From the NCBI GenBank assembly GCA_009103225.1, contig RHPI01003578.1, positions 124,001 to 188,000 of the forward strand: a DNA stretch of 64,000 nt. The letters run 5' to 3'. This DNA comes from Chlorokybus atmophyticus (lineage: Eukaryota; Plantae; Mesostigma and Chlorokybus algae). Position 1 is the stretch's first letter; each line of letters opens with the position of its first letter. The position numbers and the translations under genes were made by a program. This document shows positions 19,431-24,284 of the stretch, in pieces. The notes beneath the pieces were generated by a model. That model was not told the origin of the DNA. It saw only the letters and a list, made by a program, of their open reading frames with translations, and ran no database searches.

Positions 19431-20261
19431 TAGCTGTATACGAGCCTACCAACCACGCAAAGGAATGGTACCACGACCAAAGCATGAGGCGCTGCACACA
19501 GGATCTTAGCCCTGCCTAGAGCCTGCCATCCGCAACTTCCCCCCTGCGCACAACCGCCAGGTGCCAATCAGTTCACGGCATGGTCGTGTGACTGGTAATA
19601 TCTGGCAACATGAGCACATGAGCTACACAGCATAGACACACCGCATGACTCAACACATGAAAGTGGAAAGCACCTTCAGCAACCGTGGTGATGTTATACC
19701 CCGATGCCAAGCTCGTTGGCCAAACAAACCACAACCAGCAACACACGTCAGGTTCGCATGGCAGTAGCAGGTTGACGACCGTGTGCTGGCATCGTCGCAG
19801 TGACCCGACACTGAACAAGGACAAGACACGACATTGTCGAGGAGCATAGTGGAATGGAAGCTGCCACACTGAATTGTTGCCAGCACACAATCGAGCCGGT
19901 AATGCGCCAAAAATACCTTTCCAAGAGCAAGCTAACCTTACCAGTTGTCAGTCTTGTCAGAGTCGTCACAGTTGAGGCTAAAGACTGAGATGCCGAAAGC
20001 AGTTGTCTTGTCAACACCTGCAGCAGAGCTTGTTGTCACTTGCAGTGTGAAAAAGCTCTCTTTTGTCGCGGTCTCCAAGGCACGCCATGCAAACGTGCAA
20101 CATGTCATGTCAAAACGGCCACAGTACAGTAAGCAAGCGTGTCGCAACCATCCGCACAGGACCGAGGAGGGGGGATGTGGTACACACAAAAAGGGGAAGC
20201 CAATCGTCCACCATAGCTGTTGTTGTTGTTGACTCTGAAGGTGATCTTGACGGGGGCGGCG

Positions 20262-21350
20262 ATGCCGTTAGCCATGGAGGAGGCGGCGGCAAGGAAGGCG
20301 TCTGTACGCTCGTATCTGTACGCATTGGTGCTGTCGTTGGCATGGGGAGTGGCATTGGCATGGCCCTTGGCGACACATCTGGCCTCCTCAGCCGCTGCAT
20401 GGAGGAGTATCATCCATGCATCCACTATCTCTGATGCACCAATGATGCCGACCACCACCACCACCACTCCAAGAACATTCCTGTGGACGAGGTGGACAAG
20501 ACAGCCGCCACCTGCTCCGGAGGAAGCTGTTGATGACGAAGAGTGCACCGCCGCTGTGGTCAGCAATGTCGCCCTCCTCAGCCATCACCTGGTCGGCGTT
20601 GTCCTCCTCTTCATCCTCGTCCAAGGTGCTGCCGCGGCCGCCACAGGCCCTCTTATCCACGTCATTACCAAGAAGGTCTTCCCGTACATTGCCACCTCTG
20701 CTGCCACCGCTGCTGCCAGGGTGAAGGCCGCCAGACAGGCAGCGAAACCACGTGGGCAAGTCCTGGTGAAGGTGTCTGGCGGCGCTGGCGGGGTGCGCCT
20801 CCGCCACGTGTGGAGAGCAGAGGTCTCCCTGTTTGTCCTGCGGGAGCTCGCTGGCGGCGTCGGCGTTGCAAAGGTCAAATGGCGGGAGCCTGTGGAAGGA
20901 GAGTGGCTTGAGCTTGCCACGGAGGACGACGTGGCCCATGCCCTGGCGGCTGTGCAGAGCCAATACACCAACAACAGCAGCAACAGGAGAGCATCCGTCT
21001 GCCTGCGTATCCACGTTAGCAACCCCAACATGGTTGGTGACATCGACAACCAGAGCGTGGCTGCGGAGTCTGTGGATGGTGCGGGTCTTAGCCTTGATGT
21101 TGACGGCCACACCAACTCGAACAACGACACGGATGCCAAGCACTTTGATGCAAAGATGCACCGCCTGCAAGAAATGGTGAGACTGTGCACTGTACTTGCA
21201 TGCTCGCACTCATGTGATTGTAACAACATGCATTAGCAGGGGTTTCATGACCGTGAGCTCAACGAGCAGCTGCTGGCACGCTTCCAAGGCGACATCAAGC
21301 GCGTGGTGGCCGCTCGCGAGCTTGAAACGGGTGTTCTTACGCCAGACTGA
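20262..21350 (+). CDS. Membrane-anchored PB1-UBA protein, 2 exons (20262-21176, 21240-21350)
   Basis: Two hydrophobic segments (YLYALVLSLAWGVALAWPLA; LVGVVLLFILVQGAAAAA), then a PB1-like region (VLVKVSGG ... KVKWREPVEGEWLELATEDDVAHAL). Splicing restores the UBA signature RLQEM|GFHDRELNEQLLARFQGDIKRVVAA. Confidence 0.75.
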
Positions 21351-21740
21351 TGTGTAAGCACGCAGCTGGCTGCATTGCACACTTGCACCAACCCTCCTGC
21401 ATCAAGCCAATAACAACAAGCATGCAGGCAAGCCATACTGTTGATCGCGCAACACTGGAGAGGAGCTTCCTGCTTGTAAGCCATTGCGCCATATCAGAAG
21501 TCTTGTGAAGGCTATACCTGCAAACTGCGCAAGCACACTGTACATATATAGATTTTGTGCAAGTTGAAGCACACAACATGCTGTGCAAGTAGCCAAGTAG
21601 ACAATCTGTTGACATTGTCTTTCATAACTGAATCTGTACAGTTTCAGCCAATGGACCTGTAGAAGCTGTGTACTGCAACATGCCACGATTGGTACTGGGG
21701 TATGGTTGTATGCACACAATACCAACTTGTTTCTGTCTCA

Positions 21741-24284
21741 CTACGGCCTCAACTCCCTCCCAAACAGTGCTGCAGCATTGCGCGCGCTTGAATGCAGGAC
21801 TATTTCAGCATCCACATCGCCGGCGTAGCCCTCCGCCACCTTCTCCGCGATGTACACCAGCATGGCCGGTTCATTCAGCTTTGGGCGCGGGCGAGGGGCG
21901 TTGCGGGGTATGAGGAAGGGGCTGTCGGTGTTAAGTACAAGTCGGTTCAATGGGATGGACGGGAGAAGCTGCAGCAGTTGCTTGTTGCGACGCTCGTCGC
22001 AGATCAGTCCCGTCACGCCAATGTACAGGCCCAAGGACAAGTATGCATTGAGGTCGGATGCGTTGCCTGTGAAACAATGGATGAGGGCGCTGTTCTTGAT
22101 CTGGAAAACAAACAGGAGTGAGGGTGCTTGAAACATGTTGACAACACATAAGCTGGATATGGTTGTCATCATTACCTGCTCAGCGTAGGGAGTCAAAGCC
22201 TTTATCATGCTCTCAGCCGCATTGCGCTCGTGTAGGTACAGAGGCAAGCCCAGGCGCAGGGCCAGCTTAACCTACAAGCCGCACTATCACATAAGACAAA
22301 ACATGCACAACTTAGCTGCTCACAACAAGTCAAACCATTGCAAGCGTACCTGTTCATGAAGCCAATGCAATTGAGCGTCACGGGGCGTGAAGTTGCGCTC
22401 AAAATCGAGCCCGCATTCTCCTAGCGCCACCACCACATCGGGGTTCCCTGACGCCAGATGCTCCAGCCTGGGAAGCGTGCTAGCATCGCACTCACCCACC
22501 CTGCAACACCATTGCATATAAATGCATAATCAACCCATTCCTTCATGCATGAAGCGCACGTGCCTCAATTTTACATGTGTGGATGCACGCCCACCGTGCA
22601 CGTGACCTTCGGCAAGCTCTCATCCGCTGTTCACAAGCACGCATGCACACTCTTTAACTCATACCCTTCCACAGACAAACCAGTCAACAGTTAATACCTC
22701 TTTCACGCAATCTTTGCGCAAGGGCCACCCCGCGCGTACTGGACGGCACGTCATAGCAGTTAACGACCACCTCACGCACGCCGGCGCCCGCGGCACGCGC
22801 GAGGAGGATGTCGGGAGAGGGGACGCCTTCGCGGGCAAGCTTCTCATGGACCAGGCTGGCGCCCGCGTCAAAGGACGGGACAGAGGCGTAGCGGTTGGTC
22901 GGAGGGAGGATGCTTACGGGAGAGGCTGAGGTGGCTCTGCGTGTAATGCGGTCAATTTCATCCTGGCGCCGCTGTTTATGGCGGGACGGGAGAGTGTCCA
23001 ACGAGGCTGTGGGTGCGAACCATGCACCCTTGTTCAGTAGGTGCAGGCATAGCGCGGCAGTGTTGCGAGCATCGTCCAGGCCGCTATGGTGCCGCCCCTC
23101 AAAGGCCAGGCCGGACTCCTGCAGTTTAGTGGCATTGTTGAGGGTCAAGCCCACAGCTTTCCCAAACATGCTAATGCATGCACTTGCTGCACAACACCTT
23201 AAGCATGTGGAGAAGGCCTGCAGGCGCGTGACGGGACTTGTTGTTCACGCGTCTGTAAATCTCCTTCACGTCGCACCATCGAGTCAACGAAGCGGGGGGC
23301 TGCACTTGGGACAGCGCACACTGTGCAGCACAACAACAACTATCAGCAACCATGCAGCAAGCTACTATGGCAGAAGTGCACATGTACCACCTGAAGGGGG
23401 AGCATGCGTGCGCAGTCCCAGTTGCCGCACGTGACAACCAGCACCTCCTTCTTCTCCTTCACCTTTTTATTATCAGTCTCCTCCTCTGGTTCGAGCATCC
23501 ACTGGTCCAGGAAGGCCTCGAACTGCGCGAGGACGGTGGGGAAGGTGTCAGCGGCGTCTACATCCTCCTGGCGGATGCCTGTGAGGCGTCGGCAGAAGTC
23601 CGTGAGGCGCGGCCGCAGCACCGGACACACGTAGCGCCTGAACTCATGCACCGGCGCACGCCTAGCCCCCGCGTCCACAATCACGGCAGGGAACTCTATT
23701 ATCTCCTGCACAGGCGCAATGCAGGCTAGTGCTTGAGTGCAGTAAGGCATAATGTCAGTCACTTCAGTGTACTGGAACTGTTTCAGTGCTAGGCACTAAA
23801 AGCAGGAGGTGCACACACCTGAGGGCCAAAGTTCTCGCTTTTCTCATCGCATGTGGCCTCAAAGTCTATGACGCATAGCCACCTTGCGCCCTGCAGTGCA
23901 CAAATGTTAGCACGTGCAGTAATCATGCTCTGTGTCAGTTGTACATTCATATATACCGTCTGCTATGCAACAGCTGAGTTTTTCTCTGCTAAGCAATACA
24001 AGTAGCTGCTAACAAAGAGCACGTTAAGTAATCTAACGGGTCAATGTCACGTATTATCCAAGCTGGTGGCAACACCCAGCAGCCTGAATGGTTTGCTGCT
24101 GTGCATGCAAGTGCACCTTGGTGGTCAGCTGCTGTTCCGGTGCAGCTGCATGCAGAGAGCGACTGCTGGACGACGCCACCTTGACGGCAGATCTGCAGAC
24201 AACAATCTTGGCAGGCGATGTCAACAACAACGAACGCACCGTCGCCACCGACGCTGGCGCCAACCCCGCCGCCAAGCAGGGCAT
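21741..24284 (-). CDS. Transit peptide + ERI1-type DEDDh 3'-5' exoribonuclease fused to a TatD nuclease, 9 exons, 585 aa
   Basis: Exons 24284-24117, 23890-23819, 23705-23391, 23320-23198, 23118-22698, 22626-22575, 22500-22350, 22271-22176 and 22100-21741 join in phase (total 1758 nt). ERI1 motifs: VIDFEATC, EIIEFP, LTDFCRRLTGI, TCGNWD, FEGRHHSGLDDARN. TatD motifs: FDAGASL, TVGVHPH, LGECGLDF, LHERNA, IHCFTG, NTDSPFL, RNEP-like KLNEPA. Confidence 0.9.

Follow-up and report, generated by a model that had tools for sequence, protein, structure and literature searches.

An ERI1-TatD nuclease fusion gene of the streptophyte alga Chlorokybus atmophyticus and its counterparts in chytrid fungi

Exonucleases of the ERI1 type and nucleases of the TatD type have each been well studied as stand-alone enzymes that act on the 3' ends of nucleic acids. 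The two classes reportedly meet in Caenorhabditis elegans, where Parrish and Xue are said to have placed the DEDDh exonuclease CRN-4 and the TatD protein CRN-2 in one pathway of apoptotic DNA degradation, as separate proteins. Here we describe a gene in which the same two enzyme classes are joined in a single chain. It lies on the minus strand, at positions 24284-21741, of a 64,000-nucleotide stretch of Chlorokybus atmophyticus DNA (contig RHPI01003578.1; this whole stretch is called the window below), has nine exons and encodes 585 amino acids (aa), arranged as a 56-aa leader, an ERI1-type DEDDh exonuclease, a basic linker and a TatD barrel of the Escherichia coli type, or class I. The explanation that we favor, with a probability of about 0.7, is that this gene is a transcribed Chlorokybus member of a family of ERI1-TatD two-nuclease proteins, working along the lines proposed in the following sections.

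Each part of the protein has described relatives. The first half shares the DEDDh fold and the DFEATC, WD and HHSGxDD motifs with ERI1/3'hExo, ERI2 and ERI3 (PDB 1W0H, 4L8R, 7N8V and 7K05), while differing from them in the addition of a C-terminal TatD domain and in the lack of a SAP domain or GRF zinc finger: animal ERI1 matches carry SAP, whereas Pfam found neither SAP (PF02037) nor a GRF zinc finger in Chrsp135S02125, the database copy of the Chlorokybus protein. CRN-4 (PDB 3CG7) is also a detectable relative of this half in structure and sequence, but the Chlorokybus domain is closer to ERI1/2/3 than to CRN-4. The second half has the TIM barrel of E. coli TatD and other class I (GxN) TatD proteins, TATDN1 included (PDB 4P5U, 1XWY, 3RCM and 8EFG); these stand alone, whereas the Chlorokybus TatD is fused behind an exonuclease and has Ser for the Asn of the (G/A)xN motif and Asn for Glu201, each unique to it among about 138 homologues. 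In plants, the ERI1 homologue ERIL1 (AT3G15140) resembles the Chlorokybus protein in bearing a leader and lacking SAP, and acts in chloroplast rRNA processing, as stated in a passage of PMC11702985 that cites Mermigka 2016. The closest counterparts to the whole architecture are predicted proteins of chytrid fungi, which have the same domain order, an ERI1-type DEDDh domain, a class I TatD domain and a linker of 45-100 aa. They differ in retaining the canonical DIGANL and ETD motifs and the Trp of ITGW, in having 0-2 introns and in lacking the 56-aa leader, whereas the Chlorokybus copy has GAS and NTD motifs, the leader, eight introns and a frame-switching exon. What is new here, then, is the set of replaced TatD residues, the frame-breaking splicing of exon 6 and the leader missing from chytrid homologues; current views are not overturned, and the protein itself was already in public annotation.

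A transcribed gene with both domains in one exon

The initial annotation of this DNA, which was made from its letters alone, had claimed that the ERI1 C-terminal motif and the TatD N-terminus share one exon and one frame, and that the fusion is consequently no artefact of gene modeling. Both claims stand. A distance of 66 residues separates the ERI1 ExoIII motif FEGRHHSGLDDARN from the TatD N-terminus FDAGASL, both being in one open frame of a single exon, exon 5 (23118-22698), and the domain junction inside this exon is crossed by RNA contigs of three sequencing runs (X1, X2 and X3). The evidence from transcripts and DNA derives from four runs containing the gene, these three and X4, whose contigs were aligned to the window. 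Run X1 provides a 2575-nucleotide (nt) contig that matches the window with 0 mismatches from 24294 to past the stop codon, spanning exon 5 (22697-23117) without a mismatch, and the borders of this exon are exactly matched by contigs of X1, X2 and X3 (joints 23117/23197 and 22697-8). Since the introns seen in the contigs, which read CT..AC on the plus strand and hence GT..AG for the gene, fall exactly at the model borders, the mRNA passes without interruption over the junction of the domains: transcripts do not end or splice between the domains, an outcome for which the initial annotation had allowed. The gene model has the following features.

Exon 1, 24284-24117, minus strand: ATG at 24284 and the 56-aa leader, a candidate transit peptide or presequence
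Exon 2, 23890-23819, minus strand: ExoI motif VIDFEATC (D65, E67)
Joints of exon 2, 23889/24116 and 23704/23818: present in contigs of X1, X2 and X3
Exon 3, 23705-23391, minus strand: core of the ERI1 domain, with ExoII motif NWD (D177)
Exon 4, 23320-23198, minus strand: further part of the ERI1 domain
Exon 5, 23118-22698, minus strand: ERI1 ExoIII motif (H237, D242), basic helical linker and TatD N-terminus
Linker within exon 5, 23010-22885, minus strand: residues 263-304, basic and helical
Codon of Ser314 in exon 5, 22857-22855, minus strand: position of Asn in homologues
Exon 6, 22626-22575, minus strand: 52 nt, TVGVHPH motif with the H62 and H64 equivalents; alternatively spliced
Exon 7, 22500-22350, minus strand: TatD GECGLD, with the E91 equivalent
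Exon 8, 22271-22176, minus strand: TatD LYLHERN, with the H127 equivalent
Exon 9, 22100-21741, minus strand: C-terminal half of TatD, with the H152 and D203 equivalents
Codon of Asn523 in exon 9, 21932-21930, minus strand: position of Glu in homologues
Stop codon, 21743-21741, minus strand: end of exon 9

Run X4 contains unspliced DNA pieces that are identical to the window. The contigs of X3 are of another kind: because they differ at 5-11% of positions in every exon but the short exon 2, X3 is the orthologue from a sister strain or species of Chlorokybus, despite its carrying the same organism label. An exhaustive HMMER search with exon 5 retrieved a 585-aa database protein, 100% identical over that exon, namely Chrsp135S02125 of JGI Chlat1, which is the same as EP00898_Chlorokybus_atmophyticus_P000894 of EukProt; all nine exon translations map onto consecutive segments of it. 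The fusion model of Chlorokybus is already in public annotation (JGI/EukProt), and the gene is genuine, nuclear and transcribed in C. atmophyticus. Two trivial origins can be dismissed. The single exon 5, together with the contigs of the transcripts, rules out a chimeric gene model. Contamination with chytrid DNA is ruled out by the recurrence of the gene in three studies, in runs of DNA as well as of RNA, by the orthologue of the sister Chlorokybus species, which is about 8-10% diverged, and by the host-like introns and the host genes that lie next to it.

Two nuclease sites and a switch in exon 6

Pfam recognizes both domains in Chrsp135S02125, RNase_T at residues 63-249 (1e-23) and TatD_DNase at 328-580 (1.2e-47), and recovers them also from single exons, RNase_T from exon 3 (2e-13) and TatD_DNase from exons 7, 8 and 9, most strongly from exon 9 (5.5e-21). 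Against PDB sequences, exon 3 matches ERI1/3'hExo (phmmer, 1.9e-12) and exon 9 matches E. coli TatD (7e-25); exon 5 scores there through its ERI1 C-terminal motif only, the 55-aa TatD N-terminus being too short to score. A feature search of the ESM Atlas with the 585-aa protein gave no usable match. The model obtained with AlphaFold2 from a 60-sequence alignment has two confident domains (predicted local distance difference test, pLDDT, 87; predicted template modeling score, pTM, 0.63), with a basic helix at residues 271-290 within the linker. By Foldseek, the modeled TatD half superposes on E. coli TatD 4P5U with a template modeling (TM) score of 0.94 and a root-mean-square deviation of 1.8 Å, and the ERI half on ERI3, ERI2 and 3'hExo with TM scores of 0.84-0.91 (0.88 for ERI3).

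The initial annotation had read all acidic DEDD residues and the catalytic His as present, and so they are: the DEDDh set is complete in D65, E67, D177, H237 and D242, at columns conserved in 227-229 of 229 aligned homologues. Judged by its residues, the catalytic site of the ERI1 module is canonical and intact. The TatD half needs to be qualified, for it combines retained and replaced residues. In an alignment of 140 class I TatD domains built with a hidden Markov model, its N-terminal (G/A)xN motif, the class I motif as defined in PMC10085689, reads G-A-S, with Ser314 at the position of Asn7, where 138 of 138 homologues have Asn; its ETD motif has Asn523 at the position of E. coli E201, which is Glu in 139 of 139 homologues; and the Trp of ITGW (position 498), found in 138 of the 139, is Leu. 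The equivalents of E. coli H62, H64, E91, H127, H152 and D203 are all retained. Among these, H381 and H383 form the GVHPH sequence, the motif of catalytic His62, which is encoded by the alternatively spliced exon 6, whereas of the metal-binding triad E91/E201/D203 the Chlorokybus protein keeps E412 and D525 and has lost the E201 equivalent to Asn523. In E. coli TatD, all three residues of this triad are metal ligands and the E201A mutant is inactive (PMC4176340), while in human TATDN1 the Asn12 of the (G/A)xN motif coordinates the metal ion ZnA (PMC10085689). Hence the metal site of the Chlorokybus TatD has probably been remodeled, its catalysis being weakened or changed, not necessarily lost. 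The NTD sequence is present also in the TatD of the sister species.

A second peculiarity is located in exon 6, which measures 52 nt and is thus not a multiple of three, so that the frame downstream of exon 5 depends on its inclusion. In run X1 the exon is skipped, exon 5 being joined straight to exon 7 (joint 22499/22697); the resulting product has residues 1-366 followed by Gly and 25 out-of-frame residues, ends at a TAG (22423-22421) and is 392 aa long. In run X2 the exon is retained but is 11 nt longer, with a GC..AG intron from 22563 to 22501, and a TAA (22573-22571) directly after GVHPHM terminates the product at 384 aa. The forms assembled from C. atmophyticus, X1 and X2, consequently encode the leader, the ERI1 domain and a mere stub of TatD. 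Run X3 has both the join of exon 5 to exon 7 and that of exon 5 to exon 6, with identical loose ends at 22502 and 22628, and uses the canonical GT donor of exon 6 at 22574. Transcript contigs drop minor variants and do not prove that a full-length mRNA is absent, but they do show that splicing of exon 6 is substantially non-productive or regulated in C. atmophyticus. The initial annotation had envisaged a dual RNA/DNA enzyme, which becomes doubtful for Chlorokybus, given that two residues of the TatD metal site are replaced and the assembled mRNAs break the TatD frame.

Could the gene then be, in effect, an ERI1 gene only? On this account the TatD half would be a relic in the course of being lost, its metal site disabled and its barrel cut off by the splicing of exon 6, and the working product would be the leader plus ERI1 protein of 384-392 aa. 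The replacement of two invariant TatD residues together with the Leu at position 498, the long TatD branch in phylogenetic trees and the frame-breaking forms in both RNA runs of C. atmophyticus would all follow from it. Yet we consider this account improbable, for it agrees poorly with the signs of selection on the half that is supposedly decaying. Across exon 9, the ratio of nonsynonymous to synonymous substitution rates (dN/dS) between the window and the X3 sister species is 0.21, with 13 amino-acid changes in 107 codons, as calculated for this exon by applying the listed X3 differences to the window sequence. Exons 7-8 are, short exon 2 aside, the least diverged coding parts of the gene (5% vs. 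8-11% elsewhere); the TatD frame contains no stop or frameshift; the other six active-site residues are kept; and a productive exon 6 junction exists in the relative X3. The TatD frame is under purifying selection, an argument that the 585-aa product matters.

Returning to the two-nuclease explanation, we propose that the ERI1 module would be active in the 3'->5' trimming of 3' ends of RNA (or DNA), to which, in the chytrid proteins, the TatD module may add a second activity, of 3'-exonuclease or AP-endonuclease type, directed at the substrate of ERI1. The Chlorokybus TatD module, with its remodeled site, would probably contribute weakened or altered catalysis, or serve mainly as a nucleic-acid-binding partner, while inclusion of the 52-nt exon 6 would select between the 585-aa protein and the ERI1-only products of 384-392 aa. 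That chytrids and one early-diverging streptophyte alga conserve the pairing in one chain is a hint that both activities share a substrate. The Chlorokybus copy constitutes a natural experiment in this respect: its ERI1 domain is intact, its TatD domain has two ligands replaced and yet is selected, and a splice switch removes the barrel, so that it could reveal whether TatD contributes catalysis or binding.

The leader and the destination of the protein

The leader encoded by exon 1 had struck the initial annotation as an organelle-type presequence, rich in Ala and Ser and with a single acidic residue. The description is accurate: of its 56 aa, 20% are Ala and 16% Ser, six are basic and one is acidic (E50), for a net charge of +5. 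AlphaFold2 leaves residues 1-55 disordered save for a short helix, with pLDDT below 50 at residues 1-11 and 22-55. The ATG is preceded, three codons upstream, by an in-frame TAG (24293-24291) and is followed by no further Met before residue 181, so that translation always yields the leader and the catalytic ExoI motif together. In chytrid homologues merely 10-22 residues precede DFEATC, with the exception of Obelidium, which has 31 that look mitochondrial. Absent from the chytrid homologues, Ala/Ser-rich, basic and disordered, the candidate leader plausibly fits a transit peptide or presequence, and the organelle-type look first attributed to it is borne out to this extent. Between the sister species it shows a small length polymorphism of trinucleotide-repeat type: X3 has a 15-nt insertion of GCG type at 24265-24266, amounting to five extra Ala.

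On these grounds we lean toward the leader being a lineage-specific signal that would send the protein to the plastid or the mitochondrion. By analogy with plant ERIL1, its role there may be in the 3'-end maturation of rRNA or other RNA, and it would then represent a new organellar RNA-processing factor. A different destination is the lesser but a serious possibility: the 56-aa extension might simply be a disordered tail, or else a weak signal peptide, with the protein being nuclear or cytosolic as its chytrid relatives would be and having a role for instance in DNA repair or in trimming 5.8S rRNA. Consistent with the latter idea, most chytrid homologues are leaderless and have linkers with Lys-rich runs resembling nuclear localization signals, and the Chlorokybus linker forms a basic helix. 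Conversely, disorder and a composition such as that of the leader (20% Ala, 16% Ser, a net charge of +5 and the first acidic residue at position 50) are typical of transit peptides, the length of the leader varies between the sister species, it is always made together with ExoI for lack of an internal Met before 181, and plant ERIL1 is, in the passage of PMC11702985 mentioned earlier, a chloroplast protein.

Chytrid homologues and the origin of the fusion

A word search with the 585-aa query uncovered at least 17 proteins of Chytridiomycetes combining RNase_T with TatD_DNase, at 33-40% identity and mostly with about 89% of the query covered; for alignments over that 89% the identity is 35-40%, or about 37%. 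They come from Nowakowskiella (two species), Entophlyctis, Phlyctochytrium (two species), Podochytrium, Chytriomyces (four proteins), Irineochytrium, Obelidium, Physocladia, Synchytrium, Blyttiomyces and Dinochytrium, to which the HMMER search with exon 5 added Cladochytrium; they span at least three orders and are named 'hypothetical' or 'Exonuclease domain-containing'. Examples are HK098_001276 of Nowakowskiella sp. JEL0407, HDU81_005995 of Chytriomyces hyalinus, BDR26DRAFT_863512 of Obelidium mucronatum and SmJEL517_g03384 of Synchytrium microbalum. In O. mucronatum the whole homologue is an uninterrupted open reading frame (ORF) of 586 aa (L004, 3001-4761), and in Nowakowskiella an ORF of 462 aa runs across the domain junction. 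Two metagenome contigs from ENA (L001, 6001-7563; L002, 317-2083) also have ERI1-TatD ORFs across the junction; both show eukaryotic gene content (Separin, RRM), and the fusions are split by introns in prokaryote-style gene calls. A bacterial origin of the already fused gene is unsupported, both of these contigs being eukaryotic (Separin, RRM, split ORFs). Neither the exhaustive exon-5 search nor the word searches returned another fusion from Viridiplantae, and the searchable literature yielded co-mentions of ERI1 and TatD and no description of their fusion. The chytrid-type ERI1-TatD proteins are, as far as sequences tell, an uncharacterised eukaryotic family of which Chlorokybus has the plant-lineage member. 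The initial annotation was aware of no description of this architecture, which is correct for the searchable literature and incorrect for databases, considering JGI/EukProt, the chytrid proteins and the two metagenome contigs; it had also asked whether the fusion might be annotated and widespread already, and the answer is that it is annotated, and widespread only within chytrids.

The Obelidium gene deserves two separate remarks. Its deposited model has 567 aa because a 57-nt 'intron' is cut out of the Ala/Pro-rich linker, possibly an artefact of annotation; and its N-terminus, MSIFRSIFSKPISRSFTTRMTS, is similar to a mitochondrial presequence, unlike that of other chytrid homologues.

In evolutionary terms the distribution creates a puzzle: How did one algal genus come to have the fusion of chytrid fungi? 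Similarity alone gives little guidance, for the TatD half finds its best matches among bacterial-type class I TatD proteins (42-47% identity) and the ERI half is about equally near, at 40-48% identity, to many ERI1/2/3-like proteins. Quick phylogenetic trees placed the ERI domain near plant ERI2-like proteins, with a support of 67 that was gone in the careful tree. Trees constrained to unite Chlorokybus with the chytrids reached a higher likelihood than the quick free trees, for which reason the placements in the latter are misleading; in comparison with the careful TatD tree the same constraint costs 2-7 log-likelihood units, the long Chlorokybus branch being still unplaced. Approximately unbiased tests did not reject a Chlorokybus-chytrid clade (p 0.26-0.64). 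As a check that does not depend on trees, we considered signature columns, in which the chytrid fusions have in common a residue seldom found elsewhere. Chlorokybus has the chytrid residue in 6 of 19 such columns of TatD, a score reached by only 5 of 122 stand-alone proteins, and in 4 of 8 columns of the ERI domain, a score reached by only 2 of 213. Because of these shared columns, and of the identical domain order and subfamilies, we regard common descent of the Chlorokybus and chytrid fusions as rather probable.

The opposite possibility is that the fusion arose twice: Chlorokybus may have joined its own plant-type exonuclease, related to ERIL1 or ERI2 and already targeted to an organelle, to a bacterial-type TatD, the chytrid fusion being unrelated. 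This would account for the free trees, in which the ERI domain is unplaced or close to the plant/animal ERI2 clade and TatD lies on the bacterial side of a 97/97 split, as well as for the bacterial best matches of TatD (42-47%) and for the eight introns of Chlorokybus vs. 0-2 in chytrids. We find it rather unlikely, since convergence would have to reproduce the same domain order, subfamilies and linker length and the signature residues common to both domains, while forced monophyly costs at most 7 log-likelihood units and is not rejected; moreover, the long branch makes the free placements unreliable, and neither the exon-5 nor the word searches found another fusion or a close stand-alone relative in Viridiplantae. 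If convergence were nevertheless true, it would indicate a recurrent functional coupling of both enzymes.

Common descent would imply either a transfer between fungus and alga or many losses. Its direction, read from the distribution, would point to a transfer into the alga, given the wide spread among chytrids vs. a single algal genus; chytrids are parasites of algae. One may tentatively suppose, as a doubtful though attractive scenario, that the gene, already fused, was exchanged between the lineage of Chlorokybus and a chytrid-like fungus and in the alga gained its introns, the organelle leader, the metal site with Ser and Asn and the switch of the 52-nt exon. The gene is accordingly worth considering as a candidate case of gene exchange between fungi and algae.

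Several observations nonetheless weigh against the membership of Chlorokybus in a two-nuclease family as formulated here. Maximum-likelihood trees of both domains have Chlorokybus on a long branch (0.8-1.65 substitutions/site), apart from the chytrid clade, and BLAST scores of the single domains are no better to the chytrid fusions than to stand-alone homologues. The productive junction of exon 6 is seen only in the sister species X3, with 29 nt on one side. Human TATDN1 remains active with the mutation E220A (PMC10085689), so that a change of Glu to Asn need not abolish catalysis. The likeness to ERIL1 need not mean orthology, and the linker, being basic (RHKQRRQ...RITRR), might just as well function as a nuclear signal.

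The five stand-alone TatD proteins with high signature scores are a matter in themselves. They comprise two proteins of the bdelloid rotifer Adineta steineri (P0161, P0176), P0212 and P0037/P0038, all of bacterial type; the contigs of P0037 and P0212 have a eukaryotic gene content, and on such eukaryote contigs the TatD genes are next to mariner-type transposases or to a eukaryotic nitrate reductase. P0212 and the two Adineta proteins group with the TatD of the chytrid fusions in trees, and all five do so by signature residues, so that class I TatD seems to include a eukaryotic subclade separate from canonical TATDN1. The ERI1 domain, too, has other associations. The nearest ERI1-type domains of protists and metagenomes are fused to further enzymes that act on nucleic-acid ends, with domains of PF08719, PF01885, PF10021 and PF09414 (in P0039, P0041, P0042, P0043, P0048, P0050, P0055, P0074, P0085, P0099, P0109 and P0113), the fusions with PF08719 including one of the dinoflagellate Biecheleria cincta. 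We take PF08719 to be NADAR-like, PF01885 to be the Tpt1/KptA RNA 2'-phosphotransferase, PF10021 to be like microbial PARG and PF09414 to be an RNA ligase. Fusion with ERI1 seems to be common in modules for the repair of RNA ends.

Finally, the X1 contig extends beyond the stop codon of the nuclease gene across an intron that is GT..AG on the plus strand (window 21354-21427 and 20220-21350). It is merged with the convergent plus-strand neighbor (ORF 20220-21236), the 3' ends of both genes overlapping. The contigs of X2 and X3 stop at 21592 and 21629, respectively, probably not far from the actual 3' end of the mRNA of the nuclease.

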